Shown here one piece after another: positions 13,783 through 48,331 of a stretch of DNA of 64,000 bases. Positions within the stretch are counted from its first letter, which is position 1; every line of letters begins with the position of its first letter. The stretch is from Pecten maximus (lineage: Eukaryota): positions 29,450,001 through 29,514,000 of the forward strand of contig NC_047022.1 in NCBI RefSeq assembly GCF_902652985.1, given 5' to 3'. A program made the translations under genes and the position numbers. Under the pieces are notes generated by a model. That model was given only the letters and a program-made list of their open reading frames with translations, made no database searches and was not told the origin of the DNA.

Positions 13783-14459
13783 AACTAGAACTGTCGCCAG
13801 GATGGCTGACTAATACCCCCGTAATCTGCACGAGTCAATGGTGAATTGGAACTGTTAATTAGAGGCTAACTAAGATAACCCAGTAATATAGTGACCAGTT
13901 GCCATAGCAACCATAATTAAAAAAAAAAAAAGTGGCATGCACATCTACACATGGTCCTCTATATTTGTGTGAAGTTTCATTGAAATTGGCCATTTAGTTT
14001 AGGAGGAGTTGTCCGGACAAACTTAAAGTTATGGTTCTTATCGGAAAACCTGTATGTAGTGACCAGTTGCCATAGCAACCATAATTTTGAAAGAAAAGAA
14101 AGTGGCATGCACATCTACACATGGTCCTCTATATTTGTATGAAGTTTCATTGAAATTGGCCATTTAGTTTAGGAGGAGTTGTCCGGACAAACGTAAAGTT
14201 ATGGTTCTTATCGGAAAACCTGTATATAGTGACCAGTTGCCATAGCAACCATAATTTTGAGAAAAATAAAGTGGCATGCACATCTACACATGATCATTAA
14301 TATTTATGTGAAGTTTCATCGGAATTGGCCCATCGGTTTAGGAGGAGTTGTCCGGACAAAATGCGTCTACAGACAGACGGACGGACGGACGGACGGACGG
14401 ACGGACAGACAGACAACCTGATTCCAGTATACCCCCATATCTTCGTTGCGGGGGTATAC
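13783..14459 (+). mobile_element. HINE/Helentron-associated element, copy 1 (3 x ~170-bp core)
   Basis: 5' box AACTAGAACTGTCGCCAGGATGGCTGACTAATACCCCCG, tandem core, (ACGG)n microsatellite, 3' stem TATACCCCC...GGGGGTATA. Confidence 0.85.
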
Positions 14460-19454: not shown

Positions 19455-19759
19455 CTATTTGTTTTCCATGGCTGTGATTAAGGAGTCAGTGTCCATGCTG
19501 CATTCCTGCATCGCAAGAAAAATTGCATTCACAGTAGGCCGGGGTTTGGTCTCAGTAATGAAGTCTTTCAACATGGCTTTGATCTTGCCACGAGCTGGCT
19601 TGTGTCTGTACTGGTCGTCAAACTCATCCACTGTTTTTGGCTGGAGTCCAAGCTCCAAGAACAGGTTGAAATATGCTTTAATATCAATATATTCAGCAAT
19701 GACTGAAGCATCGTCTACCAATACGTTTTCCTGTAACCTGCTCTTTGTTAACCTCCCGT
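19455..19759 (-). CDS. ROCO death-fold domain 2, terminal exon
   Basis: IAEYIDIKAYFNLFLELGL...VDEFDDQY...KIKAMLKDF...PTVNAIFLAM, TAG stop. Confidence 0.85.
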
Positions 19760-22700: not shown

Positions 22701-25700
22701 GCCGTTGTTCATGACTAAAACATATTTTTTGCTACTATTGTTTCGTAATACTAACTTACTTGTATCATAATATCAATACATTATATTTGCATATGGCATC
22801 AGCAACAGACACATGTGTATCCAAATCAAATAATGAATCCGCCGGGAATGAAATATACCAGAACAGGTCTCACGACTTGTGTTTTTTGGATATGTCATTT
22901 GTTTCGTTCTCGTTAAGTCATAAATAATACAAAAGACACTCGCTAGAACATTCTAACAAATAATTTCTGTAAAACCTGAGATTGTTTTTGAATAAAAAGA
23001 TACGTCTACGTATCCTCTTCCCCCTACTTGGCTTTGATGGTTTTTTCCTTTTTCTTTTAATGAAATAACCTTTGACCTTTTGGCTTGAGCTAGATATTAA
23101 TGTAAAAATTGCACCTTTTTGACATTTGACCTTGAGGCCAAATCAGAGTAACGTAATTACATGTACAGTAAAATGCACATCGACTTTGTGATGCAACCCC
23201 CCACCCAAGTTTCACCAGCATCTTTTCAGCAGTTCAGGAGTCAAGGCCCAATAAGGAAATTATTGTAAAATTCGCCCTCAGTTGACCTTTGAACCTTCGA
23301 AGGGGAGGTGTATCAAATAGCATATCTTACATGTATTTGTAGTGTGACCTGTATAACTTCATAAATAAGCTCTTAACATATGGAACTGTGTCATATTCTC
23401 AATAAATGATACTGTTTGTTACAATCATCGCTTTACATATAATTATCGCATAGATATATATGAATATAAAAACTAAGGAAAGAAAAAAGTCATTTTAAAA
23501 TGCTAACACAGTTTTAAAACCCTTACATCGGACGAGACCTTGTCTAGGTGTGAGCCGACCAGGATTATTGGTGGCGTTAATTTGTCATGTGCTGCGTCGT
23601 CATTTGCATAGGTAGCAATGTTCCTCAGCCAATCTCCGGCTATTTCTGTCAACACAGATTATGATATCAAAACGATTAATTGCAACATAGCAATGGAACA
23701 GCATTGAAGCCAATGATCAGATACTAGTATACAAATGAACTAATAACAAATCTAGAACACAAGGCCCCTTTTTATACGCCCGACGAAAGACTATTATATT
23801 ATCATGTTGGCGGGCGGGCGGGCACAAATGGTGTCCGGACCATAACTCTAATACTACTCGATCCAGGTTCTTCATACTTGACACAAATATACATCTTGAT
23901 GAGCCGGAGTGTCGCATATCTAAATCATGCCCCTTTCCCCCGTATTTGTGGAGTTATTCCCCTTTGATGATTTTACTTGTCCGGACCATAACTCCAGTAC
24001 TACTCCATCCAGGCTCTCCATACTTGACACACATATACATATTGATGAGCCGGAGTGTCAAATACCAAAATCATGCCCCTTACCCCCTTATTTGTGGAGT
24101 TATTCCCCTTTTATGATTTTACTTCGGGCACATATGGTGTTGAGCTCTCCATACTTAAAACAAATATACATCTTGATGAGCTGGTGTGTCACATACCAAA
24201 TTATTCCCCCTTACGCCCTAATTAGCGGAGTTATTGCCCTTTGATGATTTTACTTATCCGGACCATAACTTCAATACTACCCGACCCAGGCTCTCCATAC
24301 TTGACACAAATATGCATCTAGATGAGCCGGAGTATTACAACCTGTGAAACTACCCCCTTCCAAGTGTCAAATATTGCGTCGGGCGTATGTTGTGGCCCTC
24401 CAATGGGCCCTTGTTTACATTTACTATGATGTGATTCATGTTTCCTCCAAATCTGCTGGGTTAACAGAAATGTAAATAGTATTGTAATCTGCATTTGTTG
24501 TGTTTGTAATCTAATTAAAATCTAGATGGTCATTATCACTACGTTACATGAACATCTAACAACATCCCATAATCAGGTTGACCTTTTGGATTAGCCAATC
24601 AAAAGACTACTTCCAGAATCTTGGAAGTGAATTTTATATGTCCGAATTAGCACGACTAGAGTCAAGTCATTTCGTCAAATAAAGCATAAAGCTATATAAT
24701 GTGCCGAAATGGTTTGCTTCAGATGCATGCTGTGACGAAATGTTTTGCTTCGATGACATCGACAAAATGCCAATTCGCCCTGAAAGTGAAAATACACACA
24801 TCTCAGAGGTCATCAGAACGTGACCCCTTATGTGATGTTGTTAGATATTCATGTTACGTAGTGAGAATGATCATCTAGATTTTAATTAAATTGTTGTGTT
24901 TGATTTGTCTTATTTTAAAGCCTCTCCAGTAGTCATAGTCAGACATTCACCTTTTCTTTGATCTTTGGACCTAAATATATTTGACCTTTAATCCAGTTCT
25001 GGGCTGCGACAGCTCGGTTGGTTAGAGTGACGGTCAAGGTCTCACACAACTAATTCAGCCATAAAACGTAATATTCCAATGGGCTAATAAGGCGGGAATC
25101 CAGGTGGGGGTTCCACTGTAAATATCGGGGTCACTGTGTGTTCCAAGTACAAGTGAACTCGTATATGCTATAAAACCTATCTAATTACATACTTTTTTTT
25201 TATGGTAGGGAAATCCTAAAACTTTAATTTGATATAAATTTCACAACATTTGAACTTCAGGTGAGCGATTGTGGGGATGGAGTCATGGTAATAACATATA
25301 ATGAAATAATTAGTTGTGCGAGACCTTAAGGGAATGACACGTGTTATTATCATCCCAGGCTTCATGCAGGATATACTAGAAAAAAAATCATGCTGAAATA
25401 TGGACCTGAACGAGTGAGTTTTTGTTTTGGCGAGATGTTTGATTTCCATTGTCTTTCGACATTATAACTCTGTCATGTTATGTCAATACAATTTATACGT
25501 GTATCTGTCTTGACTTTCGTGTTGTAGCTGATATGTACGTGACAAATTTGACAATGTCTTTTGACAAAGTGACCTTGACCTTTGGTTTCTCATGGTTTGA
25601 TTCTGATCAACGTTGCGTGAACATATCATATCATCGACATTGCCTTTCGACCCAGTGACCTAGACCACTGACCGAATGATCTTTACCTTGGTCAGTTACC

Positions 25701-28700
25701 TGTTCAATAGGAACATCTTTGCTTCATCGTGTCGTGATAAAATATTCATCAACATTTTAACTTGACCGTTGACCCTAGGACCCTGACCTATAGTAATTTA
25801 ATTCCTTGTTTAAACCCATACAACACTGCTTCATAGTGTCATAACGGTCATAAGTGAAAAGCTACAGTTAGGCTATCGCAGTGATAATTCTATAATAACA
25901 ATGAATCTTAAAATTATAATTTAATGGAAAGTCAAAGAAACAATACAAAATGTAAAAGATGACGAATGTTCACAATAAATGACCAGCATTTCCTTGAGAC
26001 TCTTGTTATGGAAATAAGTGATATGTTAGTACCGCAGATGGCTTATAGGCAAAAGGATAGGGATAAGACAGAAAAAATCTCATTACAGAAATAGGAGTAA
26101 TGGAAAGGAATTACTCTTTGTCAACTAACAATATACTATATATTTCAGAATTAGAAGAAAGTATGCGCATCAAATTTGCTGGCCGTATAAGATCGAAATC
26201 TTCTTGGCTAAAAGATTGGGAGAAACCTTCATTTTTCATATGAAACAAAATGAAATTCTAAAATAACTCAAAACTATACTAAAACCATTCAGATTTCATC
26301 GAAGATGTTGATTGGGATGAAATGCTAGAATGTCATACTTACTATAATGATCAAAGCTCGAAATTAAAGGGAAAACTTTATGAAAGTGAGATTAGGCTGC
26401 ATCAAAAACATATGAAAAATAAAATAAAAAGAATTGAAATCACTATATGCATGTTAATGTTTTTAGCAACACGTAGACATAAGGAAAGTATGAACAAATG
26501 AAACAAAAAAGTTGAAAAGACTATACAGTGCATATGTGCTTGTTTACATGCGTATGTGAGGGTGTGTATGTGTGGTTATTAGTAAACATTAAATTTTGAA
26601 CGAGAGTGTTGAATGAGTGCCCTTCTGTGTGAGGACACCTATTGTGCCCGGGGTACACCCCAGGAACGAACGGATGGACGGACGGACGGATGGACGGACA
26701 GAGTGATTGCTATTGGGCACCATAATCTTCGATACGGTGCCCTAATAAAAGAAGAAAGCAAATGTAAACAATTTACCGTAACCCACTTCGGATCTGCTTT
26801 GATCTAGACACATTTCCACGTCGACCACCAGGACGAAAACCATATTACTGGACATGAAACAATGATGCGTGTTATAGAACACTTTTTCGCCTCCGAAATC
26901 ATATAGAGTGACAAAACCCTTCAGCTCCTCAACTCCGTCTGTTTTGGTGTGCATTACATCATCTATAACGTTTCTTTGTTCCGGAGACAACAGTGCTGCG
27001 ATGGGCTTTGTCTCAGCAATAACATTTCTTTGTTCCGAGGATGCATCTACAACATGAATGCAATCTTGCAATTATCCCGCAGTAACATAATTCTTATTAG
27101 CAATATAATCAGTTGCTATTTGGGGAACGGGCTTAACCATGCGTTCACTGACAAGAAATCCATAAACTATGCCATTGCAAAGTGACGTTCAACAACAGAC
27201 GCTGACCTTTGGTTGTCTTACGATATTCGGTATGAACTGTTTTAGTCTCTACCGGCTACTTGTTCCATAGGAAAAAATATTATTACAACATATGAAAAAA
27301 AAGAGATTACCTGCATGTCTTTTATCTAAAAAGTAGTATTCTTTATTCATTTTGGCGAAATGTTGTCATATTGATGTCTGTAATAATTGACTGTTTTAAA
27401 TCTATAAGGGGTGTTGTCCGGATGACAAAAAATCAAATAAAGCCGACATAGCCAATTTATACTTTATTGTGATATATAACATCTTTACTCGATTATCACT
27501 AGGTCAGAAAACATTTTGGCGTGAATTGTATCTATCATAACTAACGAGAATAAATTCGGCATTTGCAATTTGGGATATATTCTATAAGCGAAACATAAAA
27601 TTATCACAGCTCCAAGAAACACAAGCTGCTCAGCGGAGAGTGGATGTGAAACTAGGAAAAACGTCACACTAAAAACATTAAAACTTTAAAATCAGTCTCC
27701 TCGTCATTTTTACAATAGACTGTCAAAGCTTGATGCTCTACCAACTATGCTCCGCCAAGCCAATAATGCTGGGAGAATATAGCGATATTCTACAGTGTGC
27801 ACATCAAAAGTCTATGCTAAAGCGTTGATTCATTACTTTACATACAGAGAACCCGTATTGCTTGCTGCAGGCCTAGAGTAATTATTGTCTCTAATACTCT
27901 ATCAATTTCAAGTTTTGAGTTACTGTCGATCTACAGAAATAAAGTGATTTATAGTGGTTTAGTTAGTTAGATAGTTATATATGTAGTATGGGTGTTTTTC
28001 AGCGCATTGTCAGTAATCAGCCAAACAACTTCTGCCTGAGAGTCCGTGTGATACTGCATAACGGATTACAGTATTCATGTGGTGACGTATAAGGATTCTT
28101 CTTAAAATTCTGTAGTATGATGTGAAATTACGTCTAATTTGAAATCATCTTTGACAAAGGGACCAGTGTACTGATTATGATGAGTATTCTTTAAATGTAT
28201 CACAATTATGAACGTTGTGGAAATTCATAATCACAAATACTCGAACCCAAGACATATACATCTTAAGGCAGTATGGACAGACTTACCCCTATACAATATC
28301 ATTTACATGAAACTCTCTCTAGCTATATGTGAATAATATAACTGCCTTAAGCCTTCGGTCTTTAGGTCACGGTTTTCGTGGCGTGATTAGATAATTCACA
28401 TCGTTTCTTTCTCCCTAGAATATACATGTATATTGATACACAAGCACACAGTCGGACCACACAAGAACAGAGACTTAGGAACCAACGGCGGCTGGTTCTC
28501 GATTCTATTTCTAGACCATAGGGCCGGAATGGCTCACACCATCACATTACATCATTTAAAGTACATGTAAATAAATAAATACATACGTTTTAAACCATTC
28601 TACCAATCAACACGGACAACAAACCCACACAACGCATACTCGAAGACATAATATACTGTAGCATTGAGTATTTCGCAGTAGACACCGTTTGATCGATTTT

Positions 28701-31700
28701 AACATTCGATGCCAAGATTTGATTTAGTATGCTCAGCGAAAGGAACTGTTACCTGTCTTTTTTGCCTTTTTTGCTTCTGACGGCGCAGGTAACGGCAGAG
28801 ATGAAGGGGATGAGACCATAGGTGATAGTTCTTTCATTTCTCCGGTATGACGCCCTTGCGTACTTTTATAGTCTCTTGTGTCTGTCTTTCCCCCTTTTCG
28901 GTATCGATCGATGATCCGTTTCAATCGATGACGCCCAGTCTCTATTTCACCATTGTCGTCAATTCTTTTTCGGAAGCCTGTCTTGGGGTTGTAGCCCATA
29001 TAGTTCACGTAAAAATCAGCAGTATCCGTTGAGTTAGGCCCTCCTTTCGGTATACTTTCTTGCTTGATTTGTTTCACGAAACAAGACTTCCCAACTCCTT
29101 TATGTCCGACGACAGTGATTGTAATGTTGCAGGGGTTTTCAACATTCGTCTTTATTCCCGCAGTATATTCCTGCTGCTGCTGTCGTACTTGTTCTAAATA
29201 AAATTCCAATATTTATCAATGATTCGATATGTATAAATATAAAAAGAAATGTCTTTATCAAGTCAATATAGATGTGTGGATATTTCAGTTAGAGGATTTC
29301 CAATCAAGATTGCATTTGCTCTTACACTGTACAGGGATAGCCACAGTTTTATCGGTTCTTATCTCACTCTAGGTTTCGGACAAAATACACGAGCTCTTTG
29401 GACGATCTCGACAATTGTTTGACATGACGGTAACGATGAAATGGCGGTCACGTCAGCAATTAAATCATTTCACTTCAACATTTTCTCTTTTAGCGTGTGA
29501 TGAAACACGCCAATGTTCTATGTAGCAAAAGGCGTAAATAGATAATACATTGACGATATGTAACCACAAAACTGTGATGAAAGAAGCGAAAGAACCATAT
29601 GGTAAAGACACGTTGGTGCATGTTCGGTTAATCACGAGAAAGGTTCCAATGGGCTACATTGACATTTCCGACATAGGATAAAGGTGATATTTGCCGCAAA
29701 GCAGCTGAAAATCATCAATACAGTCCACCATGGTATTTAAAAAAAACTGTCAATTATTGAAACTGCTTTCTTTTTCAATTCAAATAATACATCTTGCTCC
29801 TTGAATAACTGGGATAGCCCGTTAAACCTGCAAAACTTGTGCTTATTTTATTTTAAGCCCTTTCTAACGACATCAAACATAATACAGCAAGGATATATCT
29901 TTTCTGTAACTGAAGTTGCTGGGAATACCAACTGTTAATATAAAATCATATCGCCTAAATACAGCATATTTATAACGTGAAACTTTTTGAAAGCGAGAAT
30001 GCTTTATTGCGTATGATATGCAATAAATACACCAATATGCCGTGTTGCTACACAAAGAGGATCCAATCCTATATTTTCGATGCTAATACTAAAATAGGGC
30101 CAAAATAAGAAAATCAAAACTGAAGGCTGAAATTCACTTTCATTGCATAAAAATTATTTGGACATAAACACTAGTGCGACGCTATTCACATATAATATCT
30201 GCGTTGATTGAAATTCATGAAAAAATGAGTTATTCTAAATACAAGTCCTCGTAAATGTCTCATAACAGTTACTTAAGAAATAATTAACGATGATTCCTGT
30301 ATTATTGCAGGATATACAACGAGGACGAGGTATTTTGCAATTGAATTAATAACGAAGGCCGCAGGCCTGAGTTATTAATTAAAATTGCAAAATATCCGAG
30401 TCCGAGTTGTATATCCTGCAACCATACACGAGTCAAAGTTGATTATTTCTATTCTACCATGTACTGTTTAGTTCTGAGATCGACCTCTTTCTAATAGAAA
30501 AACAGGAACGAAACCCCGAGAAAATCTTGTAATTTATTTCTTGAGTATTGCATTATTTGTTGATGAAATATACAGGCAATACAGTACTACGATCAAGAGC
30601 ATCTATCATATGGCATTGATTTTGAAAAAAAAGGATAACAAAAAGAAAAAAAAAAGAAAAAAAGGGATATTACCTTGTTTTTTTTCGATGATCTTAGTAA
30701 CACCTTTCTTATAATTTGGCAGTACATCTCCGATCATCAACTGCAATTAAAATACAAGTCTGATTGCAACCTATTTTGTTTTGCAACAGAAAAGCGATAC
30801 CTTTGATTTGGCCTTTCCTAGGAGTAAACATATCTGGAATTCTATGTATGCTATTGTAATTTGATTTGTAGGAAAAAGTTACATTTTAAATAAAAATAAA
30901 TCAAAATATGTAAACTCTAGTGAAATACGTTTTTACTAAATTATATGACAACCTAACAATTAAATGCCATTTTGGATATAACAAACTGTGTGCCAAAGGG
31001 CATATAACCGGAATGACGACCTCTAAATCTTACAAATATCTAATTTTCGTTGTTGATAACGTAGGATTGGACGAGAGAAAGATAATAAGTCTTCGATGCC
31101 TATCTTTATGTTTGGTCGCTCCAGTTTCCCTTGAACGTGTCACAAGTCATAAGAAGTATTTCATCTAAAATTGCGACTCCGGGTCGATGTAGAAATGTAA
31201 AATGTTCTAGCTAGGTCTTCATGACCATCTGGCTAGGTCTTACCAGTGTGGAATACTACTGAATTACACATATAGACATAACAAAACGACAAAGTTTGAA
31301 ACGCGTTTATTTGTAATAGAACAATCTGATAACCCCTTGGAACCTTTTTATCATCTTGGTACATTTTTTCATTATAATAATTGCACATTTAGGTACCAAC
31401 GTAGCGCTAATGGAAATCTGCACCAACAATTGTGTTAAACTGGCAGCGCTTCTAATAGAAAAAAAAAACAGTGATTGTACCCTAATGTTACATCTTTTAA
31501 GGAAACATGAGATTGTTGCAGAGTTTCTCTGAAAGGTATGAATAGTCAAATTCCCTATAGTTACATCACATATACTTAAGGAAGATGTAGATACGAAATA
31601 GAGAAGTATCCACACACTTACCTTATCGGGATCGGCCCTTCTTTCTACAAGCATAGTAACAACGTCTTCATGACCATATCTCGCAGCTTCTCGTAACGCA

Positions 31701-34700
31701 TTTGACTGAAGCATTGAAAGCATCAATCAATAATAACTATTATCTATTGTAATTGTAAGAATTCAAAACATATATCGTACTTACAACTTAAGCAATTTTA
31801 GAAACTCAGCTATATAATGGTTAATCCGTGCGAATTATATAGTTTCACAGTTTCCGAGAAAATAGCCTAAAGAAAATGGAAAATCCTTAACATGGCGTTC
31901 GAAGTGTACTTAGTCGATGTGGGTGCAAGTCTATATTTTAACTTACGCTATGCCCTTTTCACTATCGCTTTCTACTAAATACATAATTAACTGAAGAAAA
32001 CTTAAATCAAACATTCGAGCTTTAATAAAACATAATAGAAGTAAACAGTGTTTTAAAACCCGTAAACCTTATTTGTTGTATAGACTCGTGTATCGCTAGA
32101 TCTAAAACCCATTTCACCATTAATAGGAATAAATCATCGTTTAATGTTTAATGAATATAAATTTTGCAGTTAAAGTCGCTTTAACAGCTATCGTGTTTAA
32201 GTATGCTGTTGTGTATGTTCTATCAATGCATACATAGTCCGTTATTTGGTTGGATGTTAAAGCTGGAAAGGGTCTAAAAAGATAAGATTGATATATTGTA
32301 AGAAAAAAAGGAAATGCTTCCAATGTTCTGTATACGTTTTGGGACGTACACCAATCAACAGTAGACGAGACAACCGCAAAACAAGTTTTATATGGATCCT
32401 TTGGTACTTCGATTAACGCTAACACACGTTACCCAATTAACAATTCATTCAAGCATTAACCTTTTTAATATCGGCCCCGTTATCAAGGAGTAGCGTCACC
32501 ATGTTTTTGTTACATCTGCTTGCTGCTGCCGCTAGAGGATCCCCCTAGAAATACGAATTACCGACAGAAATTACACACATAATTTGCAAATCGATCTCTG
32601 TCATCTTTTTTTTACCATATAGAGATCGAAAAAACTCTTTCCTTCTTCATTTAAAATTGGAATGAATCGAACATCGCTGGTATTTGTTAAAGTTTACGCT
32701 TTCCGTTGTTTTATTGCAGTTTTAAGATAATTAGCGATACCGTTTTGACTTTGAAAATGCCAAAAAAGGTTCATGAATTTGGAGAAAATTGGACCTTCTT
32801 AGACATTAGTGAATAGATACAATCCAAAAACCAAAAACCGTGTAAATTTTTCCATTCTTATAAGGTTATTTTTTATTTTTATATATTTATATTTGCTAGA
32901 ATGTTTAATGTTATGTCGTGAAGTCGACAAATTTGGTAATTTGGTAATTTTTTTATAGTATCATTTCTCATATGTATGAATATAATTGCTATCATGATTT
33001 TTTCTATAAAATCTACATCTTAAAATAACTTGGAGTTCCCTCCCTTTATTGGTTCTAGTTAAACCCATTATAGAATAGATGTAAATATAATGTATACTTA
33101 TAATACATGGTAGCTTGGAAAGAACTTATATAGACCTAGCCTGATGTAAAATCCCTTTGATATATTAAAAGTAAATACATTTTTGTTGAAATTAAATTAA
33201 ATTCTTATAATTCATTTGTAGCCTCATGAAACTCTAGACCTAGCGAAAATATACGATAGCCGTGATTTATTTGCTTTTCCTTGATCACTTTGAGCTACAG
33301 TGATGGAATAACTGTAAATTTAGTATACAGTCTCTTACACTACAAATTGGTTTACTCACTACATGTAAATAGAGTAGAATGTATCGTATCACCCAGATAA
33401 GTATTTCCTGTTTTAAATACTACTGACATTCTACTAGATATATCATAGACTGACCATTGCTAATACGTGTTGATTTGAATTGCTAATCTCATTTCCATCA
33501 TGACATGCTTCCTCCTACATTTTTATAAAAAAAAACAATTGCGGGTATACTAAAGGTAAAAGCGATCTATCCAAACAATAATGCTACTATTGAAGCTATT
33601 CTAATGGGAATAAAATATACCTACTGTGTCACTATTTCATACAATTTAACGAAAGTTTAAACAGATGCTGAACTTCGTTGAAATATATTGATCATTGAAA
33701 AAAGCCTGCGATAGTTACATTACATATCACAATAGAGTGAAGATGTTGATCCCAAGTAGAAACATGTCCACAAAATTACCTTATCGGAATTTGCTCCTCT
33801 TTCTAGAAGCATAGTAACAATGTCCTCGTCACCGTGTATTGCAGCTTCTCGTAACGCCCTGGACTGGAACATGGAAGTATCAATCGGTCGATAAACGATA
33901 TATCATAGGAATTCATTTTGATTGAGAAAAACATAATTATGTTTGGATGTGTTTGTCAAAATTCATTCTGATGAAGGTAGAAATCATAAATATACAAATG
34001 AAAGAAATTATATTGTTACAAGAAGCAATTCTTGTAACTGAAAGATATCCAAACAAAAATATAAAGTTATTGAAATGGAATCATACAAACAGTGTTGTTA
34101 ATAGATAACTAGAACTGTCGCCAGGATGGCTGACTAATACCCCCGCAATCTGCACGAGTCAATGGTGAATTGGAACTGTTAATTAGAGGCAAACTAACAT
34201 AACCCAGTAATATAGTGACCAGTTGCCATAGCAACCATAATTTTGAAGAAAAAAAGAAAGTGGCAGGCACATCTGCACATGGTCCTCTATATTTGTGTGA
34301 AGTTTCATTGAAATCAGCCCTTCGGTTTAGGAGGAGTTGTCCAGACAAACTTAAAGTTATGGTTCTTATCGGAAACCCTGTTTATAGTGACCAGTTGTCA
34401 TAGCAACCATAATTTTGAAAAAAAAAAAAAAAAAGCGGCATGCACATCTACACATGGTCTTCTATATATGTGTGAAGTTTCATTGAAATTGGCCATTTAG
34501 TTTAGGAGGAATTGTCCGGACAAACTTAAAGCTATGGTTCTTATCGGAAAACCTGTTTATAGTGACCAGTTGCCATAGCAACCACAATTTTGTGATAAAT
34601 AAAGTGGCATGCACATCTACACATGGTCCTCTAAATTTGTGTGAAGTTTCATTGAAATCAGCCCTTCGGTTTAGGAGGAGTTGTCCGGACAATCTAAAAG

Positions 34701-37700
34701 TTATGGTTCTTATCAGAAAACCTGTTTATAGTGACCAGTTGCCATAGCAACCATAATTTTGAAGAAAAAAAAAAGTGACATGCACATCTACACAGGGTCT
34801 TCTATATATGTGTGAAGTTTCATTGAAATTGGCCATTTAGTTTAGGAGGAATTGTCCGGAAAAAACTTAAAGTTATGGTTCTTATCGGAAAACCTGTTTA
34901 TAGTGACCAGTTGCCATAGCAACCACAATTTTGTGAAAAATAAAGTGGCATGCACATCTACACATGGTCCTCTAAATTTTTGTGAAGTTTCATTGAAATC
35001 AGCCCTTCGGTTTAGGAGGAGTTGTCCGGACAAACTAAAAGTTATGGTTCTTATCAGAAAACCTGTTTATAGTGACCAGTTGCCATAGCAACCATAATTT
35101 TGAAAAAAAAGTGACATGCACATCTACACATGGTCTTCTATATATGTTTGAAGTTTCATTGAAATTGGCCATTTAGTTTAGGAGGAATTGTCCGGACAAA
35201 CATAAAGTTATGGTTCTTATCGGAAAACCTGTTTATAGTGACCAGTTGCCATAGCAACCATATTTTTGTGAAAAATAAAGTGGCATGCACATCTACACAT
35301 GATCATTAATATTTGTGTGAAGTGTCATCGGAATTGGCCCATCGGTTTACGAGGAGTTGTCCGGACAAAATGCGTCTACGGACGAACGGACGGACGGACG
35401 GACGGACAACCTGATTCCAGTATACCCCCCTAACTTCGTTGCAGGGGTATAATAAATGTAAAATGTGTAACTGTTAACAAATTATTGTTAAATTATTGCT
35501 CAAAGCCACCCATTTCATGAAAATACATAGTTTTGGTATTCTTGGACCATCTTAAAAGATTCCATTTGTTGATACTGAAATTATTGTATCCTACATTTTT
35601 TATTTATTCTTTTTATTAATCTTTTTTTTTCATTCTTTTTCTTCAATTCCGTTTTATGTTATTATTTTTAATTTAACTTGTGCATGGCCGTATATACATG
35701 TAGATAACACGAATACTGCTACACAGATTATAATTAGAGCCTCTCTACATGTATGTCTTTGTTCATCGATTAAGATCTTTATTAAGCTCAACTTCATTAA
35801 CATCAATGGGTTTTTCTTCATTTAAAGTACAGTCAAGTATGTAATAAACCTTTAAAAATATAATGTGAACCAGCACTGTGTGCGCCGAATTATATCCCCG
35901 AATGATAAACAGAAAAGCACGGGTTTGTTTATCCAATGCCAAGATGTTTCACACAAAAACTGATACAAGCTACCTTGTACAATTATATATTTTGATGTTC
36001 GGTCAGTGCTATGCAAGAGTTCGTTATATGATTTGAAGTTGGAAGCTAAAACACCATAAGTATATATATATAAAATAGCATTGGTTATTAATACAAATAT
36101 GTTTTCATTGTTCGCGGTAATTTTTGAAATTACTAAACTAAAAATGAATAATTTCAATATAGTATTTTTTATAATTGCGGTTAAAATAACAATCTTATTC
36201 AATAAGCAGTAGCCAATTGTCATCAACCAAGCCTTTGGCATTATTCCCATTATTTATTTTCTTTGAGATTACGGTAAAGTGTGTCAAACAGGTTCCTACA
36301 TTTTATCTGACATGTGAATAAGCACACAATGTTTCTTATTATTCAAAGTGAAAAAAAGCTAATCAGAAAAGTATTTGCTTGTGTTCAATGTGTATGTAGG
36401 GCATATTTTCCAAATGCTGTCCCTGATAGTGTTTTACACAAACATATGGATTCCGATAACTTTATACTTTGTAGAGGTAAAGGCTTGATTCTAGAATTAC
36501 CCTTGATGTAACATTTGATTCCTAGATTATATCGATGAGACAAACAATCGAAAAACTATTCTGTTTGGATCTTGTGGTACTTTGATAATATCATTATACG
36601 GTGTTGAATGTAAATTAATATTTCACCTATTCCGAATTTCGGATATAGCAATAGTCATGGAGAAAATATAATCTTTGTATCACCTTTAATAATTAAAATA
36701 TAGGTCTGGTGCACAGATGTGTGTAGAATATCACAGTTCATTAAGATATCTACCTTTTTAATATCTGCTCCTTTATCAAGAAGTAGTGTCATTATGTTTT
36801 TGTTAGGTACGCTTGCAGCTTCTGTCAGAGCATCATCCTATGAATATAGAAACCATCGATAGAAATTTATACATAAATTGCAAATATGCCGCGTAAAGAA
36901 GTAAACGCCTCATGTGCTCGCCATAAAAATGAAATGAGTATAATATCACTGCTAGGTGGAAATTGACACAAAAAAAGTCCTCTACACAAAATGTTCTCTA
37001 TTTTTTCATATTTTGAATTCTTAAATGATATGGAATGATATGAAAGATCAGATTAAAGGAAACTGACAAGTACAGATAAGAATTGTCCACGACGATATTT
37101 ACGTTTTACATTTAATGTCTACTTGTCATTGGGAAACAGCTGTATTGTGATTGATTTAAGGCAATGACTAGTAATGTAATGTAATGATAAACATGTGTAC
37201 ATATTTGTATCCAATAAATCTGAAGATCAAACGTTTGTGACTCACAATGAACTATGTGGATCTTATTTGCGGATATGGCATCATAGAAATATAAATCTTC
37301 ATTTTTTTACTCTTAAGTTTAGCAAGGATGAGAAGATATTGCAGTGTGAAAAAGTTGATAACCCCATCAGGACAACCCTCATTACTAGTAAGCATATGTA
37401 ATAATGGTGGTCATTTATATGGCATTCCTATAATAGTTAATTACATATCACAATGAAGGGAAGATGTGAATCCAAAATTGACATATTTCCACATACTTAC
37501 CTTATCTGGATCGGCGCCTCTTTCTAGAAGCAGAGCAACAATGTCTTCGTGGCCATATCTTGCAGCTTCTCGCAACGCATTAGACTAAAACATGGCAAGT
37601 ATCAATCGATAAATGCTACAATCTATTTAACTCCATTTTGATACTTTTATGAGTGGTTTTGATTTTGAGATATTTCAATATGATCAAGGTTGAAAGAGTG

Positions 37701-40700
37701 AAAATACAAATAATCATTAATGTGAAATAATCGTCAGGTTTCTCCATAACAGTTATCAAATTTAAATATAGAATTCGTACGCGCTTTGTTCGATTAGTGA
37801 TATGCAAATCCGTTACTTGTTCTGATGTTTGAAGCTGAAACACCAAAAGTCTAAAAAGATAATATTGGCATGTTGTTAGGAAACAATGTTTGGAAACAAG
37901 AGTCTCTATTATGTACGCTAAAAGAATGGAATCGGATAAAAATTGCAATGAAATATTTAATAATCAAGGTAAAAATAAAAGCTTTATTCAAACAACGGTA
38001 GTCAATTGTCATCAAACCATTATTTTGTATCAATCATATCTGTAATCTTATATCAGATTCAGGAAAACTAAGTACTAATAAGAACCAATTACCCTCAGCA
38101 GTATTTAATTTCTCCATTAAATGCCAATTTTTAATTAGGTAATTGCAGCATAGTGATTCAAGGCGGTAACCCTGGATGTAGAATCAATGGTTTTTTGTAT
38201 ATAATCCAAATGCGAGGAAATGTGCGATTCACCATGAAGAATAGATTATATTTGAAAAAAACGTCACCATTAAAACGTCACCATTAAAATACAGTCTTCA
38301 TTTTTACTCTTGTAGTCATGTGGATCACGTAACCGGGTGTAATGTTGTATTGTTAAGCTGCTATCGCTATTTCGACGCTGCGGTAAACATATACGTTAAT
38401 TATGAATACATTTAAGAGAGGTTTGCGATCTTGTATTATCTTTAATGTGAATGTTTTAATGAGTATCTCCAAAAAGAGAAATAATTGCGTTTACTGTATT
38501 TCTTATTAATCATGTTCATTAATACATTAAATGTAAAATGATAACAGACCCTTTTCACAATCAATGCTTGCTGTTATCTCCCCTGTCCTGTGATATTACG
38601 AAGAGGCGAGACAACAATGCACACATGTGATAGGTTATATTCTTAGTATTGTAAATAGATACTTCCGTAGCCGACAATAAACCAAGAACCTCCTTCCTCT
38701 TCATGTAGACTACATACAATTATGTAATGTGTGTGAATGATACTTGAGACTTTAACCTTTCGACTGTTGATAATAAATCATACCCATTGTCTTACTGAAA
38801 TATCCGGACTGCCGCACAGTAAACCTACCTGTATGCAAATGACACGTACGTTTACAAACGACCGCGATTTCGAGTTTTCAAGTTAGAACTACTGTTCCAT
38901 TGGTACGTTGTGCCTTGTTGATCTTCATCACTGCTTCGTTTCATCATATTTGTTGTAATCTACATAAATATTTTAGTTAACACAGAAGCGGGTTGTTTGA
39001 AATTATCAAAAACCAAAATATAATAAAACACGATTTAGAAGCATGTGATTCGTAATTTGCAGTATGTCATCATTTTTAAATGGCATAATGTAATATGAAA
39101 TAAGCATATGTTCCGCTTAAGGTTATACATTTTATCTGAAAAAAAAATCATATGAGAGATATGATTTAAAGAAAATTTACAAATAGTGGTAAAACGAAAT
39201 CATCGTTTGCATTAGGTATTTTTACATTAAACGGTAAGTTAGAATGAGAGGATTGCTGCAGATCTATGTCTAAAAGATTTCCAAACACTTACCTTATCAG
39301 CATCTAATGCTCTATCTAGGAGCATCGAAACAATGTCTATATAGCCATACAGTGCGGCTGTGCCCAACGCATCCGACTTGAAAATGGAAAGTATCGACCA
39401 AAACTATTTCATTTTTTTCATTATTCATTTTAACGAAAAGAGACATACATGAAAAAAGACGACGACTTGCCCGATATAAAAATAAATTGAAAATAATCTC
39501 GTAATATCGAATGAATATTCTTAAATTTGTAGGCAACCATGCCAGATTTACATTGCTATCACAACGGAATCATAAATGTATCGATAGTAATACATGTTGA
39601 AAGGCATTGTCGTAATTGTAAAAGACAATGGTAAATATACCATCAGATAACCAAATAGATTAAAGTTGAATATCTGATATAATGAACTTATCGTATTATA
39701 AGTTAACAGTTGTTCATTTGTCATTAAATTGTGATTATTTGGTATTTTGCTTATTTTTTCTGAAAATACCGGTAAGTAACCTTTGTTCTGTTCTATGTGT
39801 TATCAAACAGAGTATGTAAGTAAAATTGAAATTCTGTGCAAAACGATATGCTCAACAAGTGTCGCGAAATGGAAATAACAAACACGTCGTTTTATCTTCG
39901 CTATCATCTCTGAGTATAATTAAATGTATGTGTTAACACATTTCCAGATGTTATTGGAGACGTTACTTAAATATACGTGGAATAGTTATAACGTATTATG
40001 TTGGTGAGGTTTCAGATATTTTAATCTCTGTATCACCTGAAGTATTTTTAATATTACTATGGGCCGCAAACGTTTTAATATAAGATATTATTGCAACACT
40101 TACCCCTGTAACATCTGATCCTTTATCAAGAAGTAGTGACACTACGTCTTTATGACCATTTCTTGCTGCATAGGCCAAAACATCCCACTGACGAAATGGT
40201 AACAGTCAATAGAAAAACATTTAAACTAAATCGCATTTCGACAATGAATCAATCATTTTATTTATACAATAAGAATATTATACATGTATTTATCTGTAGC
40301 CTAGATAAATATGCCTACAGAAAAAACGCAACATTTGAACAAGGGCTTTTATCAGTAATTCATTATTGGTTAATTGTAACGCTTAATTGTTTACATTTCC
40401 ATATCTAAAAATCAAATGATCTGTGTTGTCGTATCCTTCAAAAATCATATACATATATAATTTGCGAGGCACCCGGTTTCATCACTTCGCTTCCATATAT
40501 CACAGATGGAGTGTTTAAGTAGCATTTTGATAAATCTGTATCAAGTTAAGTTACTGCTAGCCCTCAGTGGTATTGTTATGGTGATGAGGTCTTCATTTAC
40601 TAATATCACAACTGACTTTGTTATCAAACAGTGATGTTTACTATATATACTAGATACACCAGTCGTACAATGATGTAATGATGTATATAAGAATATACAG

Positions 40701-43700
40701 GAAGTATAAGAGGAATATAGGAAGTATAAGAGGAATATAGGAAGTATAAGAGGAAAAGATGCTTGCGGTTTGGAAAAGGTACATATGGAAAAAAAGGATC
40801 ATATTCCAGGATGAGGTTCATGTAGGAGGAAAAAGTACATACAGGTGGAAAAGGTGTACAAATTGAGGGAAAAGATGAATATAGGAGGTAAATGAATGTT
40901 TGATAGCTCTGTATCTATACTACTATTACAGTCCACTGAAAAAGTCGTTTTCCACAAATACTCAACACAGTGTCACGGTGTAATAGGTCCAATAGCATTA
41001 GTTATGTACTATAAGTGGTATACTTAGTCTGAGAGTCGCCCAGCTGATTGGTGAATAAAGTACATATCAATAAAAAAGGATTATCTTAAGACATGGCACT
41101 CTCATAAAAAAAAACCCTGGTAAAACTACGGCGTGAGCCGCAATCAAATGATCTGTGGCTGATGATAAATGACAAATTATGAAGTATTTGATAGACTTTC
41201 CTTTGCACTAAACATACGTAGGTAATATAACTCCCATACATACGAATTAACTGGTAGGGTGTTAACTACAGTGGTATATTACAGTAATTGAAGAATGGTC
41301 AAGCTTATCAATATGTTTCATATGGTGCCATCCATTTTTGTGTAGTATTAGATGTGGACAGTAACATGTGTTTGAATCTGTTCGATCAGGAATCTATGTT
41401 TGCTAGCACGCCATCTTCCACCCGTTGTCTCGTAATAGGGTATCATTGTCTGATATCTAAAAAGGTTGTTCTCTTAACCGTTATCAGTGTAAGAATAAAT
41501 AATTGCGTTTCACATTGCTATCTTATTCAAACAGCACTTCCTCATTGTCAACAAAGTATTTTATATTATCTTTCGCCTTTCAAGAGGAGGATTATTTACA
41601 TGAATATGTTTTTTTAAATAGTATGTTCACCGCATTTGAAACAAACTATGATCTGGTTTGTAAACCAACAAATATTCTGATTGTGGTGCGAATAGAGTTG
41701 ATCATAAGTAATTTCTATATTATCTGCAACGATGAGGAAAGAGCACAGCATCCGTAAAAAGTGATGTGAAATGAAGTGAAAGAAAGTCTGGCCTTTTTAT
41801 TCCGGTAGAAGCACTATATATATTGAAACATTTAGTTGAATACATTGCCATGGGTTCCACCGATCAAACAACCTACACATACAAACATGTTTTATTTCGA
41901 TCCGTCACCAACATTCAAGTATTCCAATGAACTTTGAGATGGTGAAATGAGTTTTTGTGTTACCTGTAATATTCTAAAGTGTTACCTGTGATATCTATAA
42001 TTTTACGACTTACCTTTTTGATATCTGCTCCTTTATCAATGAGTAGTGTCACGATATGTTTATGCCCTTCTTCTGCTGCGTACATCAGAGCACCCCCCTG
42101 CAAACAGAAAAACAAATTTCAGTTTTCATTGTCAAATATTTTGATCCCTTTACATGTTATGAATACTTACACTGGTTACCGATTGGCTAAAATTTGACGA
42201 AACGTCATGATAAGTTTTTCTATTTGCAGCTCTGGTTCTGACCAATCTCCATAGCAATTTTTTTCCAAAAAAGATTGATCATCAAACTTAAGTAGTTATC
42301 CTACCAATAAGAACCTATAAGTCAGGATATATGTTCATACATGTCTATTCCAGTCAGGTAAATTGGTTAAGCTGGTGTTACACAGTTTGGTATTGAAACA
42401 ATTTTAATTGGATTGGAAACATTGTGCAAAAATCGGTATAACTATCACATGAAACCATATAAAATCTGGTTTTCATTTAGCTGAAATAGCATGTGCAAAT
42501 ATCAATGTAAGCTTTAATGACTACCTGAATCAGATAATGAGAGAGAACGATTTCGAGTATTTAACATGTGTTCCATTTGAAATATATGTAATCTAAACAT
42601 TCATCCTTATCGATGTCTTTCTAATTTGTTTTGTACTAGTATATACTTACATACTTGCTTACTTCCTTACAAATATGTATTTTCTTTAAATAAAACAAAC
42701 CAAAGAAAGAAAGATAAACAGTATTTAGGAGAATGGAGGTCTTCCTATCAAACACTGAGTCAGTCACCTTATTAGGGTCAGCGCCCTTCTCTAGCAACAT
42801 TTTCACGATGTCCACATCACCATTCTTTGCTGCCTTTCCCAATGCCTCACCCTGAAATAAACAATTAATTTTTTGATAATAACTTGGACCAATTAGAGGC
42901 AAGTAAATGGTCATTTCCGTAGAATGTAAAACTGAGGCTCCGAGAGCATACCCAATTCCATCAAAATCGGACAACGTCTAAATTTCGACCATTTAAAGGC
43001 CAGCCATTTTGTCAAAACGTGAAAGACAGGTTACGAGAGTGACCGGTGTCAAATGATGCACATGCCAAATGTCATTAAAATCTAGATTGCGACCAATCAG
43101 ACGCTTCTGTTTCTTTACCATAGCAACCAACCTTTTCGGAAATCGACATATCAGAGGCCTCCATTTCGTTATATGACAACCAAACTTTCTGAAAGGATTA
43201 TCACGTTATCCAGCATCCCTAATGAAAACTCCTCTCTGTACCATTAACATCTTAATCACGAGACGAACATTATTTAAGTGGTATACAAACTAGCATACAC
43301 ACACATATAATACATTTGACTCGTATATCTATACTCACTCAAACACACACACACACACACACATATATGATATATATACATGTATATCATCATCATCATT
43401 ATATAATAGTGGTATGACAGATCAAGTGGCAGATCATTTCTGGCAAGGACAGTGCAAATGGTACACTAAACCACTTTACATAACTTTCAGCTATTCGACT
43501 GTGTATCGGTTACATCCTGTATGGACAATACGCTAGGTCGTACCAACGCAGCTCCTTTCTGAAGTGCTTTTGGCACAGTATCAAAACAATTTATATGAAT
43601 TATTAGCTGAACAATATAGGGATAGTGACATTGCCGGTCGTTGACTTAGTTATGATAATCTGTCAATTTATTAACATTAGCTTTACTTTAGCGGTATTTT

Positions 43701-45844: not shown

Positions 45845-46625
45845 AACAAGGATGGATAGTATTGCAACAGCAATACAAAGTCCCCTGCCTGACCTAGGAG
45901 TGCACCTGTTCATTTCCCATTTTTTAAACTGTTATACTGATCATGTATACCAAGTTTCGTTAAAATCGCAGTAGTACTTTAGGAGGAGTTGTCCGGACAA
46001 GCCTCAACCAATGAGAAGCCGGCGGCCATTTTGAAAAATGTTTTTTCAAAAAAAAAAAAAATATGGGATGCACAACTGCATGTTATTCTGATAATGTATA
46101 CCAAGTTTCGTTAAAATTGGAGTAGTACTTTAGGAGGAGTTGTCCGGACAAGCCTCAACCAATGAGAAGCCGGCGGCCATTTTGAAAAATATTTAAAAAG
46201 AAAAAAAAAAATAAACAAATAAAGTACAACTACATGTGATACTGATAATGTATACCAAGTTTCGTTAAAATCGGAGTAGCACTTTAGGAGGAGTTGTCCG
46301 GACAAGCCTCAACCAATGAGAAGCCGGCGGCCATTTTGAAAAATGTTTTTTTCGAAAAAAAAAAATGTGGGATGCATAACTACATGTTATACTGATTAGG
46401 CATACCAAGCTTCATTAAAATCGGAGTAGTACTTTAAGAGGAGTTGTCCGGACAAGCCTCAACCAATGAGAAGCCGGCGGCAATTTTGAAAAATGGTTTT
46501 TCGGGGAAAAAATGTGGGATGCACAACTACATGTTATACTGATCATGTATACCAAGATTCGTTAAAATTGGAGTAGTACTTTAGAAGGAGTTGTCCGACA
46601 TATTGTGCCCAAAAGAATAGTAAAA
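45845..46625 (+). mobile_element. HINE-type element with ~150-bp tandem core (about 5 copies)
   Basis: 5' box AACAAGG..GTATTGCAACAGCAATACAAAGTCCCC; core shares AGGAGGAGTTGTCCGGACA with the 170-bp family. Confidence 0.75.
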
Positions 46626-48331
46626 GGGACTGGAATCGACAAAATACTAGGCTTTCCTTGGGAAAAGAATTGATTCGTTGGAACTAATCAAAAGAAGAAA
46701 AATGAATAGACTCGAATTCTGATTTTGCCGTGCGTGTATAATGGACTGCTGGTTAGCTTGTTACGTATTTCTCGAACAATATCAGCTTCACCGATCTTAA
46801 TTTCATCAATATTTTGTTGTATCTATATTACTTTATTTCAAAATTAAGCTTTTAGTTGTATGTTTGTTTATATTGATCAGTAATTACGAGAATATTTTGC
46901 TAATATGTTAGGCAAATTAACGTATACTCGATATGTAAACATCGGCCATTTGTGTAGTTTATAATCATGGGTAAATGTAGTGTGCGTTGTTGTAGTTATC
47001 GGCAATGTGACAAATCTCGTGATAAAAATAAATATTATTTTTCGACATAGCTGTATAATTTTCTTTTGGCCCTGATATGACGCGAAAGGTGGCGTTACTG
47101 GTCAAGATGAAATATGTGAATTATCATTGTAGCGGTAAATGCAAAATGCAGATATGCATTTAAATATCGAATGCAAGCTGAATAAGTGGGTGTATCAATT
47201 CAAATGACACATTAATAAAATCATATTCCTGATTCAAATGCAGTCTTATTATCACCAAACTGATATCACTTTGTTATCCGTGCTGAAACGCATGTATTAA
47301 TTATTTCGTTAATTTATTTCACCAGCAGTTTTACATCATAACCACCGGCATTAAAACTATGCCGTTTATGTTTTTTAAAAGATATTTCTTGTTATACACT
47401 GATGTTGCAAGGATTCCCCCGGTCAAGCGTCCAGTCCAATGATCACGAGCATCTTGGATTGCCATTAACACATGTGTTCAACAAGAATTTTAGGTTATTT
47501 GGGAATATGTGCTGGCTTTAAGTCGCATAGTTTATGTTAAAAGGATGTTAAATACCACATGCTGTACCTTTATATACTTATAACCAAACAATATTGTACG
47601 ATATGGCTTTATTCAATATTCGACATTTTCTTAATCTGTATCTAAATTATCTGTTTTATAATGCACTTGTAGTCGCATTAGATTTAAAACTTTGTATACG
47701 GCCTTGTTTCCCCATTTGATGGCCCCAGAAACGTTCAATGGTTACCGTTGGCTGATGTACTTTTTGCCGCTCGCTGATTGATATATCTGATTTTTCAACA
47801 TTTTCGCAAAAAGAATTCACCAGTGTTATTTCCATCTGAAGTTTTCAAACGAAATGTGGCAGTGAACAAGTTTACTGCGGTCGTAATTCTGCCGAAACTC
47901 CACCTTAGAATGCATACGGACATCTATTTTGTAGTGATTTTCATTCAAAGGTTATTTTCAATTTTATGATTTTATGATAGTTATTTTAGTAGGGTCCCTT
48001 GTCATGATGTTATAGTGTGTTTTATAATATAAATCTGATGGATGCCTTTCCATGATGTTTTTATAATGTTTTCATTCCAACTTTGTATGATACACGTAGC
48101 ATGGTCATGCGATTCTTCCAAATTTATGCTAATCATATATGTGAGCGTGTTATGATGTCTCTTTAATAAATTGTCATCATGTCTGAGATTTTGTAATCTT
48201 GCATTAGATTTTTAAACACCCAATGGTGTGATATTTTGTATAGATGGAAAATAACCAGGTGGATGTGGACTGTTAAGTTATGGAGGGTTAATATGAATTT
48301 GTAGTCTAATAGCATTGGAGGATGAACATGA

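Follow-up and report, generated by a model that had tools for sequence, protein, structure and literature searches.

The 64,000-nucleotide (nt) stretch of Pecten maximus DNA analyzed here (C8:29,450,001-29,514,000; hereafter the window), which holds 0 ambiguous N letters, encodes on its minus strand the gene LOC117333139, labeled 'uncharacterized protein' by NCBI. The 19 coding exons rebuilt from the window give exactly the protein of NCBI isoform X1 (XP_033748168.1, database record P0184; 1188 amino acids, aa), with a complete reading frame of 3567 nt and 18 introns that are all of the GT-AG type. The exon model is record P0184 walked along the window; whole-protein analyses used the same record and the exons were searched singly. 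A further record, P0159, whose cluster consists of the four LOC117333139 isoforms, also maps exon by exon onto the window. When the assembly of 918,306,378 bases in 3983 contigs is searched, the locus proves to be single-copy. The coding exons comprise a start exon of 33 nt, nine exons of 84 nt and then exons of 67, 441, 270, 119, 350, 886, 31, 309 and 305 nt, at the following window positions:

43132-43164, minus strand: first coding exon, start codon and 11 residues, ending in phase 0 (P0184 walk; isoform X3 uses another first exon)
42768-42851, minus strand: ankyrin exon 1, 84 nt, phase 0/0, 28 aa (exon scan, Pfam Ank, P0184 walk)
42014-42097, minus strand: ankyrin exon 2, 84 nt, phase 0/0 (exon scan, P0184 walk)
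40104-40187, minus strand: ankyrin exon 3, 84 nt, phase 0/0 (exon scan, P0184 walk)
39293-39376, minus strand: ankyrin exon 4, 84 nt, phase 0/0, with a degenerate GAD motif (exon scan, P0184 walk)
37501-37584, minus strand: ankyrin exon 5, a terminal-type repeat and duplicate of exons 7 and 9 (P0184 walk, spliced RNA contigs)
36754-36837, minus strand: ankyrin exon 6, duplicate of exon 8 (P0184 walk, spliced RNA contigs)
33780-33863, minus strand: ankyrin exon 7 (P0184 walk, spliced RNA contigs)
32461-32544, minus strand: ankyrin exon 8, skipped in annotated isoform X4 (P0184 walk; included in contigs of runs X1, X2 and X17)
31622-31705, minus strand: ankyrin exon 9 (P0184 walk, spliced RNA contigs)
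30674-30740, minus strand: linker exon, 67 nt, start of a predicted long helix between the ankyrins and Roc (P0184 walk, model)
28753-29193, minus strand: Roc exon with P-loop GHKGVGKS and a Ser/Pro-rich insert predicted to be disordered (motif, Pfam, model)
26777-27046, minus strand: Roc exon with switch II DFGGE (motif, Pfam)
23527-23645, minus strand: Roc exon with G4 motif SHLD (motif, P0184 walk)
22011-22360, minus strand: end of Roc and start of COR-A (motif, Pfam, P0184 walk)
20987-21872, minus strand: large COR exon, used as the family probe (Pfam, genome search, Foldseek)
20818-20848, minus strand: 31-nt micro-exon between COR and the first death domain (P0184 walk)
20111-20419, minus strand: predicted first death domain (AlphaFold2 and Foldseek)
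19455-19759, minus strand: putative second death domain and stop codon (weak Pfam Death and RIPK1 matches, homologs, predicted helical bundle)

The initial annotation of this DNA had placed nine ankyrin exons, each of 84 nt and in phase 0/0, upstream of Roc, COR and death-fold exons, and we find them on the minus strand across exactly that span (31622-42851), each with AG directly before it, GT directly after it and an open frame in phase 0/0. Chance open reading frames can be rejected as their source: among 130 AG-(84 nt open)-GT candidates on both strands of the window, these nine score 73-146 against one another and the next best scores 5. Each exon encodes 28 residues on the scaffold xxALxxAAxxGxxDIVxLLLxxGADxxK, and single exons match the Pfam Ank profile at about positions 5-29 of 33. 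The residue pairs that had been listed before and after the AA of this scaffold are all correct, and the symmetry of the exons bears out the earlier statement that any subset can be removed in frame. Symmetric exons are confined to the ankyrin block, the remaining downstream exons being in mixed phases.

RNA contigs from four public P. maximus runs (X1, X2, X3 and X17, from three studies) were placed on positions 31600-37599, which hold exons 5-9. Single contigs in runs X1, X2 and X17 join 37500/36836, 36754/33863, 33779/32543 and 32461/31705, and those of run X3 show the first two of these four joints only; every joint reads CT..AC on the plus strand, that is, GT..AG for the gene. Because the joints fall at the exact exon borders, exons 5-9 are real, spliced and used together. 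LOC117333139 is an intact, transcribed gene.

The encoded protein is laid out as 11 N-terminal residues, nine 28-residue ankyrins, a long helix, Roc (interrupted by a disordered insert), COR and two predicted death domains. On isoform X1, the Pfam scan gives 175.7 bits for Ank_2 (cut-off 27.3), 37.2 bits for Roc (cut-off 27) and 27.8 bits for ANK_LRRK2 (cut-off 27.5). The GTPase motifs G1 (GHKGVGKS), G3 (DFGGE) and G4 (SHLD) are legible in the exons and conserved in the family alignment, and full-length homologs exceed the Pfam cut-offs for Roc and COR-A and in some cases also for Death. A whole-protein AlphaFold2 model that used 44 family sequences reached a mean predicted local distance difference test (pLDDT) score of 83.7 and a predicted template modeling score of 0.72; it places the long helix at residues 275-301, the disordered Roc insert at 390-448 and COR up to about residue 968, followed by two helical bundles. 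In Foldseek searches the core of the model matches LRRK1, LRRK2 and the LRR-Roc-COR and RocCOR structures of Chlorobium tepidum, with 8e05, 6hlu, 3dpu and LRRK2 entries among the structures matched, and COR lies directly C-terminal of Roc, as judged from the Pfam scores of homologs and the match of the model to 3dpu, 6hlu and LRRK1/LRRK2.

The first death domain has no sequence-level match in Pfam or in phmmer searches against solved structures. Modeled alone, it is predicted to form the six helices of a death fold with a pLDDT of 89.7, and the 16 best-ranked chains found by Foldseek are all death domains, with RAIDD leading (TM-score 0.75/0.83, root-mean-square deviation 2.0); the others are from PIDD/RAIDD, ankyrin, TRADD, RIPK1 and FADD, and the E-values throughout are weak, at 0.013 and above. 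The putative second death domain matches Pfam Death weakly (E 0.045; 14.3 bits, below the cut-off), as it does the death domain of RIPK1 (E 0.17), and the paralogs P0005 and P0011 exceed the Pfam Death cut-off at their C-terminal ends. The Pfam scan of the protein revealed no kinase domain, and neither a signal peptide nor a transmembrane segment, neither of which was specifically predicted, turned up. The architecture is that of nine short ankyrins, Roc, COR and two predicted death domains, without a kinase.

The repeats themselves depart from the familiar ankyrin unit. At 28 residues they are five below the canonical 33-residue ankyrin repeat, and this spacing holds across the family, being exactly 28 residues in 115 of 122 spacings. 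When the array is aligned to designed ankyrin repeat proteins (DARPins) and ankyrins, a gap of about five residues opens at every repeat junction, which is also the exon junction, and the residues missing from each repeat are those of the inter-repeat loop or hairpin; the repeats of LOC117333139 do not form the canonical 33-residue unit with an inter-repeat beta-hairpin or loop. The ankyrin signature (Ank_2 as above, Ank at 128.8 bits) and the stacked helix-turn-helix arrangement are both present, with AlphaFold2 predicting two helices per 28-residue repeat over residues 12-263 at a pLDDT of about 85-93. Foldseek matches this N-terminal part to DARPins, ankyrin-R/B and the ankyrin sensor domain of RNase L, and a look-up in the ESM Atlas returned only 'ankyrin'. 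The scallop array is therefore like these canonical proteins in sequence signature and in helix-turn-helix stacking, and differs from them in that each repeat is five residues shorter at the place where they carry a loop or hairpin. Among 1.2 million natural ankyrin repeats, a survey counted deletions in just 1.4%, mostly no longer than 3 residues, and it describes natural arrays as highly sensitive to them (PMC7314423). Given this rarity and the 28-residue period, whole arrays of such confidently modeled units are an unusual structural variant of ankyrin. We found no description of 28-residue ankyrin arrays in the literature.

The genome was searched with a profile of the nine exons, which gave at least 150 scored matches (629 candidates), and with the COR exon, which gave at least 80 matches clustered on C17, C9 and C4; both counts are lower bounds. 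Against 1.84 billion cluster representatives, the COR exon finds 97 proteins that reach E 1e-10, and those relatives that carry a name all belong to four scallops, namely Pecten, Mizuhopecten, Argopecten and Ylistrum. As far as these sequence comparisons reach, the expansion appears so far to be restricted to scallops. Among close relatives the Roc-COR core is conserved and the N-termini vary: some consist of a short-ankyrin array, some of HEPN_DZIP3, and some proteins have no N-terminal module at all. For six close paralogs, the upstream 30 kb contained 0, 0, 2, about 3, 4 and 6 of the 84-nt ankyrin exons, almost always bordered by AG and GT, and the nine of LOC117333139 form the longest array among the proteins retrieved (family range 0-9). 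In some paralog arrays, certain exons have a broken splice site or contain a stop codon. The other scallops yielded no one-to-one ortholog, their nearest protein being about 53% identical. LOC117333139 is already in NCBI as an uncharacterized locus, and the kinds to which it belongs, ROCO GTPases and ankyrin repeats, are known; among the papers retrieved, we found no description of this scallop family or of bivalve ROCO proteins with ankyrin and death domains.

Individual relatives illustrate the range of N-termini. An N-terminal DZIP3-like HEPN domain replaces or joins the ankyrin array in P0006 (HEPN score 157 bits), P0165 and P0167, from Pecten maximus and Argopecten irradians, and in P0167 (2276 aa) HEPN occurs in one chain with seven 28-residue ankyrins, an AAA-type NTPase and Roc-COR. 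Six ankyrin exons, one of them with a GC donor, lie upstream of the paralog LOC117317727 (C19:24404251-24434250), of which the annotated protein P0217 begins at a Met inside the fifth of these exons and holds the last repeat only; the annotation may be truncated, or else decay of the upstream exons may be under way.

Within LOC117333139 the exons bear the marks of duplication. Exons 5, 7 and 9 share 73-79% identity over 176-294 nt, reaching into the intron flanks, exons 6 and 8 are similar over 154 nt that likewise extend into the flanks, and each of exons 5-9 has its best repeat match inside the same gene. The repeat type of exons 5 and 9 resembles the last repeat before the linker in paralogs. 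The identity of the intron flanks and the within-gene best matches show that a two-exon unit ending in a terminal-type repeat was duplicated twice, and the array grew by tandem duplication of exon-plus-intron units that gave exons 5-6, 7-8 and 9. Regular arrays of ankyrin exons also occur elsewhere in the genome: at C17:7111928-7118132 on the plus strand with an inverted twin about 9 kb away at C17:7127139-7133124 on the minus strand (period about 851 bp), at C1585:797-14026 and at C9:2229982-2240112 (periods of 1461 bp for C1585 and a two-exon unit of 2863 bp). Neighboring exons in these arrays have identical or near-identical scores, which points to recent tandem amplification of exon-plus-intron units. 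Among the matches listed, no COR or Roc match of the family adjoins the C17 arrays; a similar array on C3944 has a partial Roc-like match 6.5 kb downstream. One repeat per symmetric exon together with tandem exon duplication, the pattern of the brown-algal ROCO genes, is present here, and diversification of exon copy number in the germline is supported.

In 51 unique repeats of the family, entropy is highest at positions 5, 10, 9 and 6 (3.25-3.60 bits), which are the two residues on either side of AA and lie on one face of helix 1; the wide variation of the residues flanking AA, first remarked on in the nine exons, is thus a property of the family. The variable positions after AA are presumably those randomized in DARPins as positions 13 and 14. 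Between the duplicated exons of LOC117333139, the ratio of non-synonymous to synonymous substitution rates (dN/dS) is 0.2-0.5. The corresponding ratio of proportions (pN/pS), pooled from 13 nearest-neighbor exon pairs of the window and four paralogs, which are non-independent, is 0.78 at positions 5, 6, 9 and 10, 0.40 at all other positions and 0.31 at the scaffold (core) positions. The excess of replacements at the four positions over the rest is significant, with a Fisher p of 0.007, again from non-independent pairs, and 0.78 is not above 1, the neutral expectation. These values fit relaxed or mixed selection on a surface patch formed by positions 5, 6, 9 and 10, and they neither establish nor argue against diversifying selection.

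Four isoforms of LOC117333139 are annotated, which, like those of Argopecten below, are computed: X1 (1188 aa), X2 (1187 aa; a one-residue change at an acceptor site), X3 (1182 aa; an alternative first exon) and X4 (1160 aa), in which the 28 residues of exon 8, and no others, are missing relative to X1. The annotated isoforms of paralogs in Argopecten irradians show such differences too, of 28 aa in three genes and of 56 aa in one, and every one of these falls inside an ankyrin array. No exon-skipping joint was seen for exons 5-9 in the contigs of the four runs, which drop rare variants and show the main form. Mutually exclusive splicing of the Dscam type can be rejected, since individual contigs contain the whole of exons 5-9 and the annotated proteins include all nine exons. 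A single constitutive isoform had been named as one of the outcomes that would speak against a re-shufflable array; the contigs do include all of exons 5-9, and the annotation adds the skip of exon 8. Together these data point to occasional cassette skipping atop a dominant full-length form and not to a combinatorial repertoire. Of the proposal that the array diversifies by exon copy number or by combinatorial splicing, the first half is sustained by the paralogs with 0-9 exons and by the duplications, and for the second no combinatorial set of isoforms was seen.

Alternative splicing in the family has a second, non-ankyrin site. Annotated paralog isoforms differ in whether they contain small basic cassettes, 17-35 residues long and with many K, R and F, which lie between the Roc P-loop and switch II in P0161, P0198 and P0211-P0214 and near the annotated N-terminus in P0225. 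The Roc cassette region corresponds to the disordered insert 390-448 of LOC117333139 (exon 28753-29193).

In its core the protein resembles the ROCO GTPases LRRK1/LRRK2, MFHAS1 and Chlorobium tepidum Roco, which also have Roc followed by COR and repeats N-terminal to Roc, but it has no leucine-rich repeats (LRRs), kinase or WD40 domain; its repeats are 28-residue ankyrins, and its C-terminus consists of two predicted death domains. In domain order it is like DAPK1, which consists of a kinase, a calmodulin-binding segment, 8 ankyrin repeats, Roc-COR and a death domain; no other human ROCO protein is known to run from ankyrin through Roc and COR to a death domain, as the scallop protein does. 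Unlike DAPK1, however, the scallop protein has two predicted death domains and not one, repeats of 28 and not 33 residues, and neither the kinase nor the calmodulin-binding segment, because it starts 11 residues before the first repeat; it also belongs to a scallop-only expansion and is not a conserved single-copy ortholog. With that start and no kinase match, we reject LOC117333139 as a DAPK1 ortholog.

The precedent in brown algae to which the initial annotation appealed, the LRR-ROCO candidate immune receptors (Zambounis 2012; Teng 2024), is real and documented, and it offers the nearest conceptual parallel. There, LRR-ROCO genes have 72-nt phase-2 exons, with exon shuffling, alternative splicing and positive selection (PMC11378527, Teng 2024). 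The scallop gene shares with them the ROCO core, the coding of each repeat by a symmetric exon of its own and the tandem duplication of such exons, and scallop isoforms with unequal repeat content are annotated; it differs in having ankyrins and not LRRs, exons of 84 nt in phase 0 and not 72 nt in phase 2, and death domains, and in being animal. Whereas positive selection has been shown for the algal genes, the scallop pN/pS at the variable positions is 0.78. Lineage-specific expansions of death-fold and NTPase proteins, centered on TRADD-N and Death families, have been described in sessile marine invertebrates (Kaur et al. 2021, PMC8195603), and the scallop family is like those of bivalves in its lineage-specific growth, death-like domains, variable architectures, putative ankyrin sensors and HEPN. 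In that paper the term ROCO was found in a reference title only. For a gastropod, Aplysia, a study reports fusions of ROCO domains with TIR and MyD88-like proteins (PMC9334734).

Taking these observations together, we consider it probable that LOC117333139 is an intact, transcribed member of a scallop family of ankyrin-Roc-COR-death-domain genes whose exon modularity would act mainly in the germline and whose proteins, by analogy, may work as other repeat-NTPase-adaptor sensors do. By comparison with ROCO proteins, NLRs and DAPK1, the variable helix-1 face of the ankyrin solenoid may be where a protein partner or ligand binds, and Roc-COR may serve as a nucleotide-dependent dimerizing switch. 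The tandem death domains could then, by the same analogy, nucleate a death-fold signaling assembly in a cell-death or innate-immune pathway. The modular exons would mainly serve the gain and loss of repeats among paralogs in the germline, with occasional cassette skipping in addition. Since bivalve death-fold expansions with ankyrin and HEPN are on record (PMC8195603), an immune or cell-death role of LOC117333139 is plausible.

Several points weigh against this account. In the Pfam scan of isoform X1, COR-A scores 34.7 bits, 0.6 bit short of its cut-off of 35.3, and Death is not called in the scan of the whole protein. Ankyrin exons 1-4 rest on the NCBI model, the RNA contigs having covered exons 5-9, and isoform X4 is a computed annotation that is not seen in those contigs. 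The C17, C1585 and C9 arrays are known from coordinates and not from sequence.

Of the alternatives, the one that retains most force is that the array is coded by splicing or varies somatically, with many exon combinations per cell, individual or infection, as in brown-algal LRR-ROCO genes or arthropod Dscam. In its favor, all nine exons are 84 nt long and in phase 0/0, the annotated X4 skips exon 8, one or two ankyrin exons are absent from several isoforms of the Argopecten paralogs, helix 1 carries the positions that vary most, and the algal parallel is documented; yet the contigs of four runs show full inclusion of exons 5-9 and no skip joint, only one ankyrin-skipping isoform is annotated for LOC117333139, pN/pS does not exceed 1 at the variable positions, and, as all exons are used together, the splicing is not mutually exclusive. 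A splicing-coded sensor array is a possible, minority reading on the present evidence, and we hold it to be unlikely.

Germline modularity has also to be set against a plainer possibility, namely that the protein is a constitutive signaling scaffold, a DAPK1 without its kinase that binds one fixed partner such as a cytoskeletal protein, and that the exon layout is a mere leftover of how the array was built. Vertebrate ankyrin genes also have one repeat per exon, the dominant transcript includes exons 5-9, and the low dN/dS between the duplicated exons indicates purifying selection, all of which speak for such a scaffold. The family argues otherwise: COR-exon matches number at least 80, N-terminal modules and ankyrin counts differ among close paralogs, no one-to-one scallop ortholog was found (the nearest protein being about 53% identical), recent tandem exon arrays occur elsewhere in the genome, and the helix-1 face evolves faster than the rest. 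We judge this scaffold distinctly unlikely. A decaying or non-functional paralog with a drifting array, to which the degenerate GAD motif of exon 4 and the broken splice sites or stop codons of some paralog arrays might point, is very improbable indeed, and we reject a pseudogene, given the complete and intact 3567-nt frame with 18 canonical introns, spliced expression in several studies, intact nucleotide-binding motifs and a confidently predicted fold.

The intron between ankyrin exons 6 and 7 contains one further listed feature:

34107-35470, no strand assigned: dispersed repeat with an internal 169-170-bp tandem array, outside the coding unit (genome search, RNA contigs)

This repeat also occurs at 13886-14360 and has 4189 candidates in its own genome, at 87-93% identity and on all chromosomes; its summed RNA contig depths run into the thousands, and with so extreme a depth it is abundantly transcribed or lies within many transcripts. 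A separate 154-bp tandem array is found at 45930-46597. A minisatellite at 48326-51197 is built of about 80 copies of a 36-nt unit (79% matches), with a GC skew of up to +0.6 and a GC content of 0.45-0.48 against about 0.34 around it, and on each strand several of its frames are free of stops, one of them reading as a 12-residue unit rich in Thr, Pro, Ser and Cys; it may be mucin-like coding sequence or plain satellite. Downstream of the gene, the minus strand at 12200-13300 carries fragments of a reverse-transcriptase-like frame (motif GIPQGSVLGPSLF...VNDL) with internal tandem duplications of 50 and 79 nt, which is probably a decayed non-LTR (long terminal repeat) retroelement, and 6700-7554 holds a 58-nt tandem repeat of 14.6 copies (91% matches).

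Arrays made wholly of 28-residue ankyrins run counter to the reported intolerance of such arrays to deletions, and could inform the design of repeat proteins. Beyond this, our preferred account of a germline-modular scallop family leaves room for a bolder idea, that scallops carry an animal counterpart of the exon-shuffled ROCO receptors of brown algae: fast-turnover cytosolic sensors whose recognition surface, the variable helix-1 face of a hairpin-less solenoid of 28-residue ankyrins, would be diversified as paralogs and haplotypes gain or lose 84-nt exons in tandem, and further by exon skipping, and which would signal through their death domains. We offer this idea tentatively and regard it as doubtful. 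Bivalves are of aquaculture interest and do without adaptive immunity. If the family does sense pathogens or danger signals, it would be the second independent case, and the first in an animal, of a ROCO core joined to an exon-modular repeat array; if this is true, the idea of the shufflable receptor would reach beyond brown algae, and a GTPase-based class would join the NLR-like innate receptors of bivalves.

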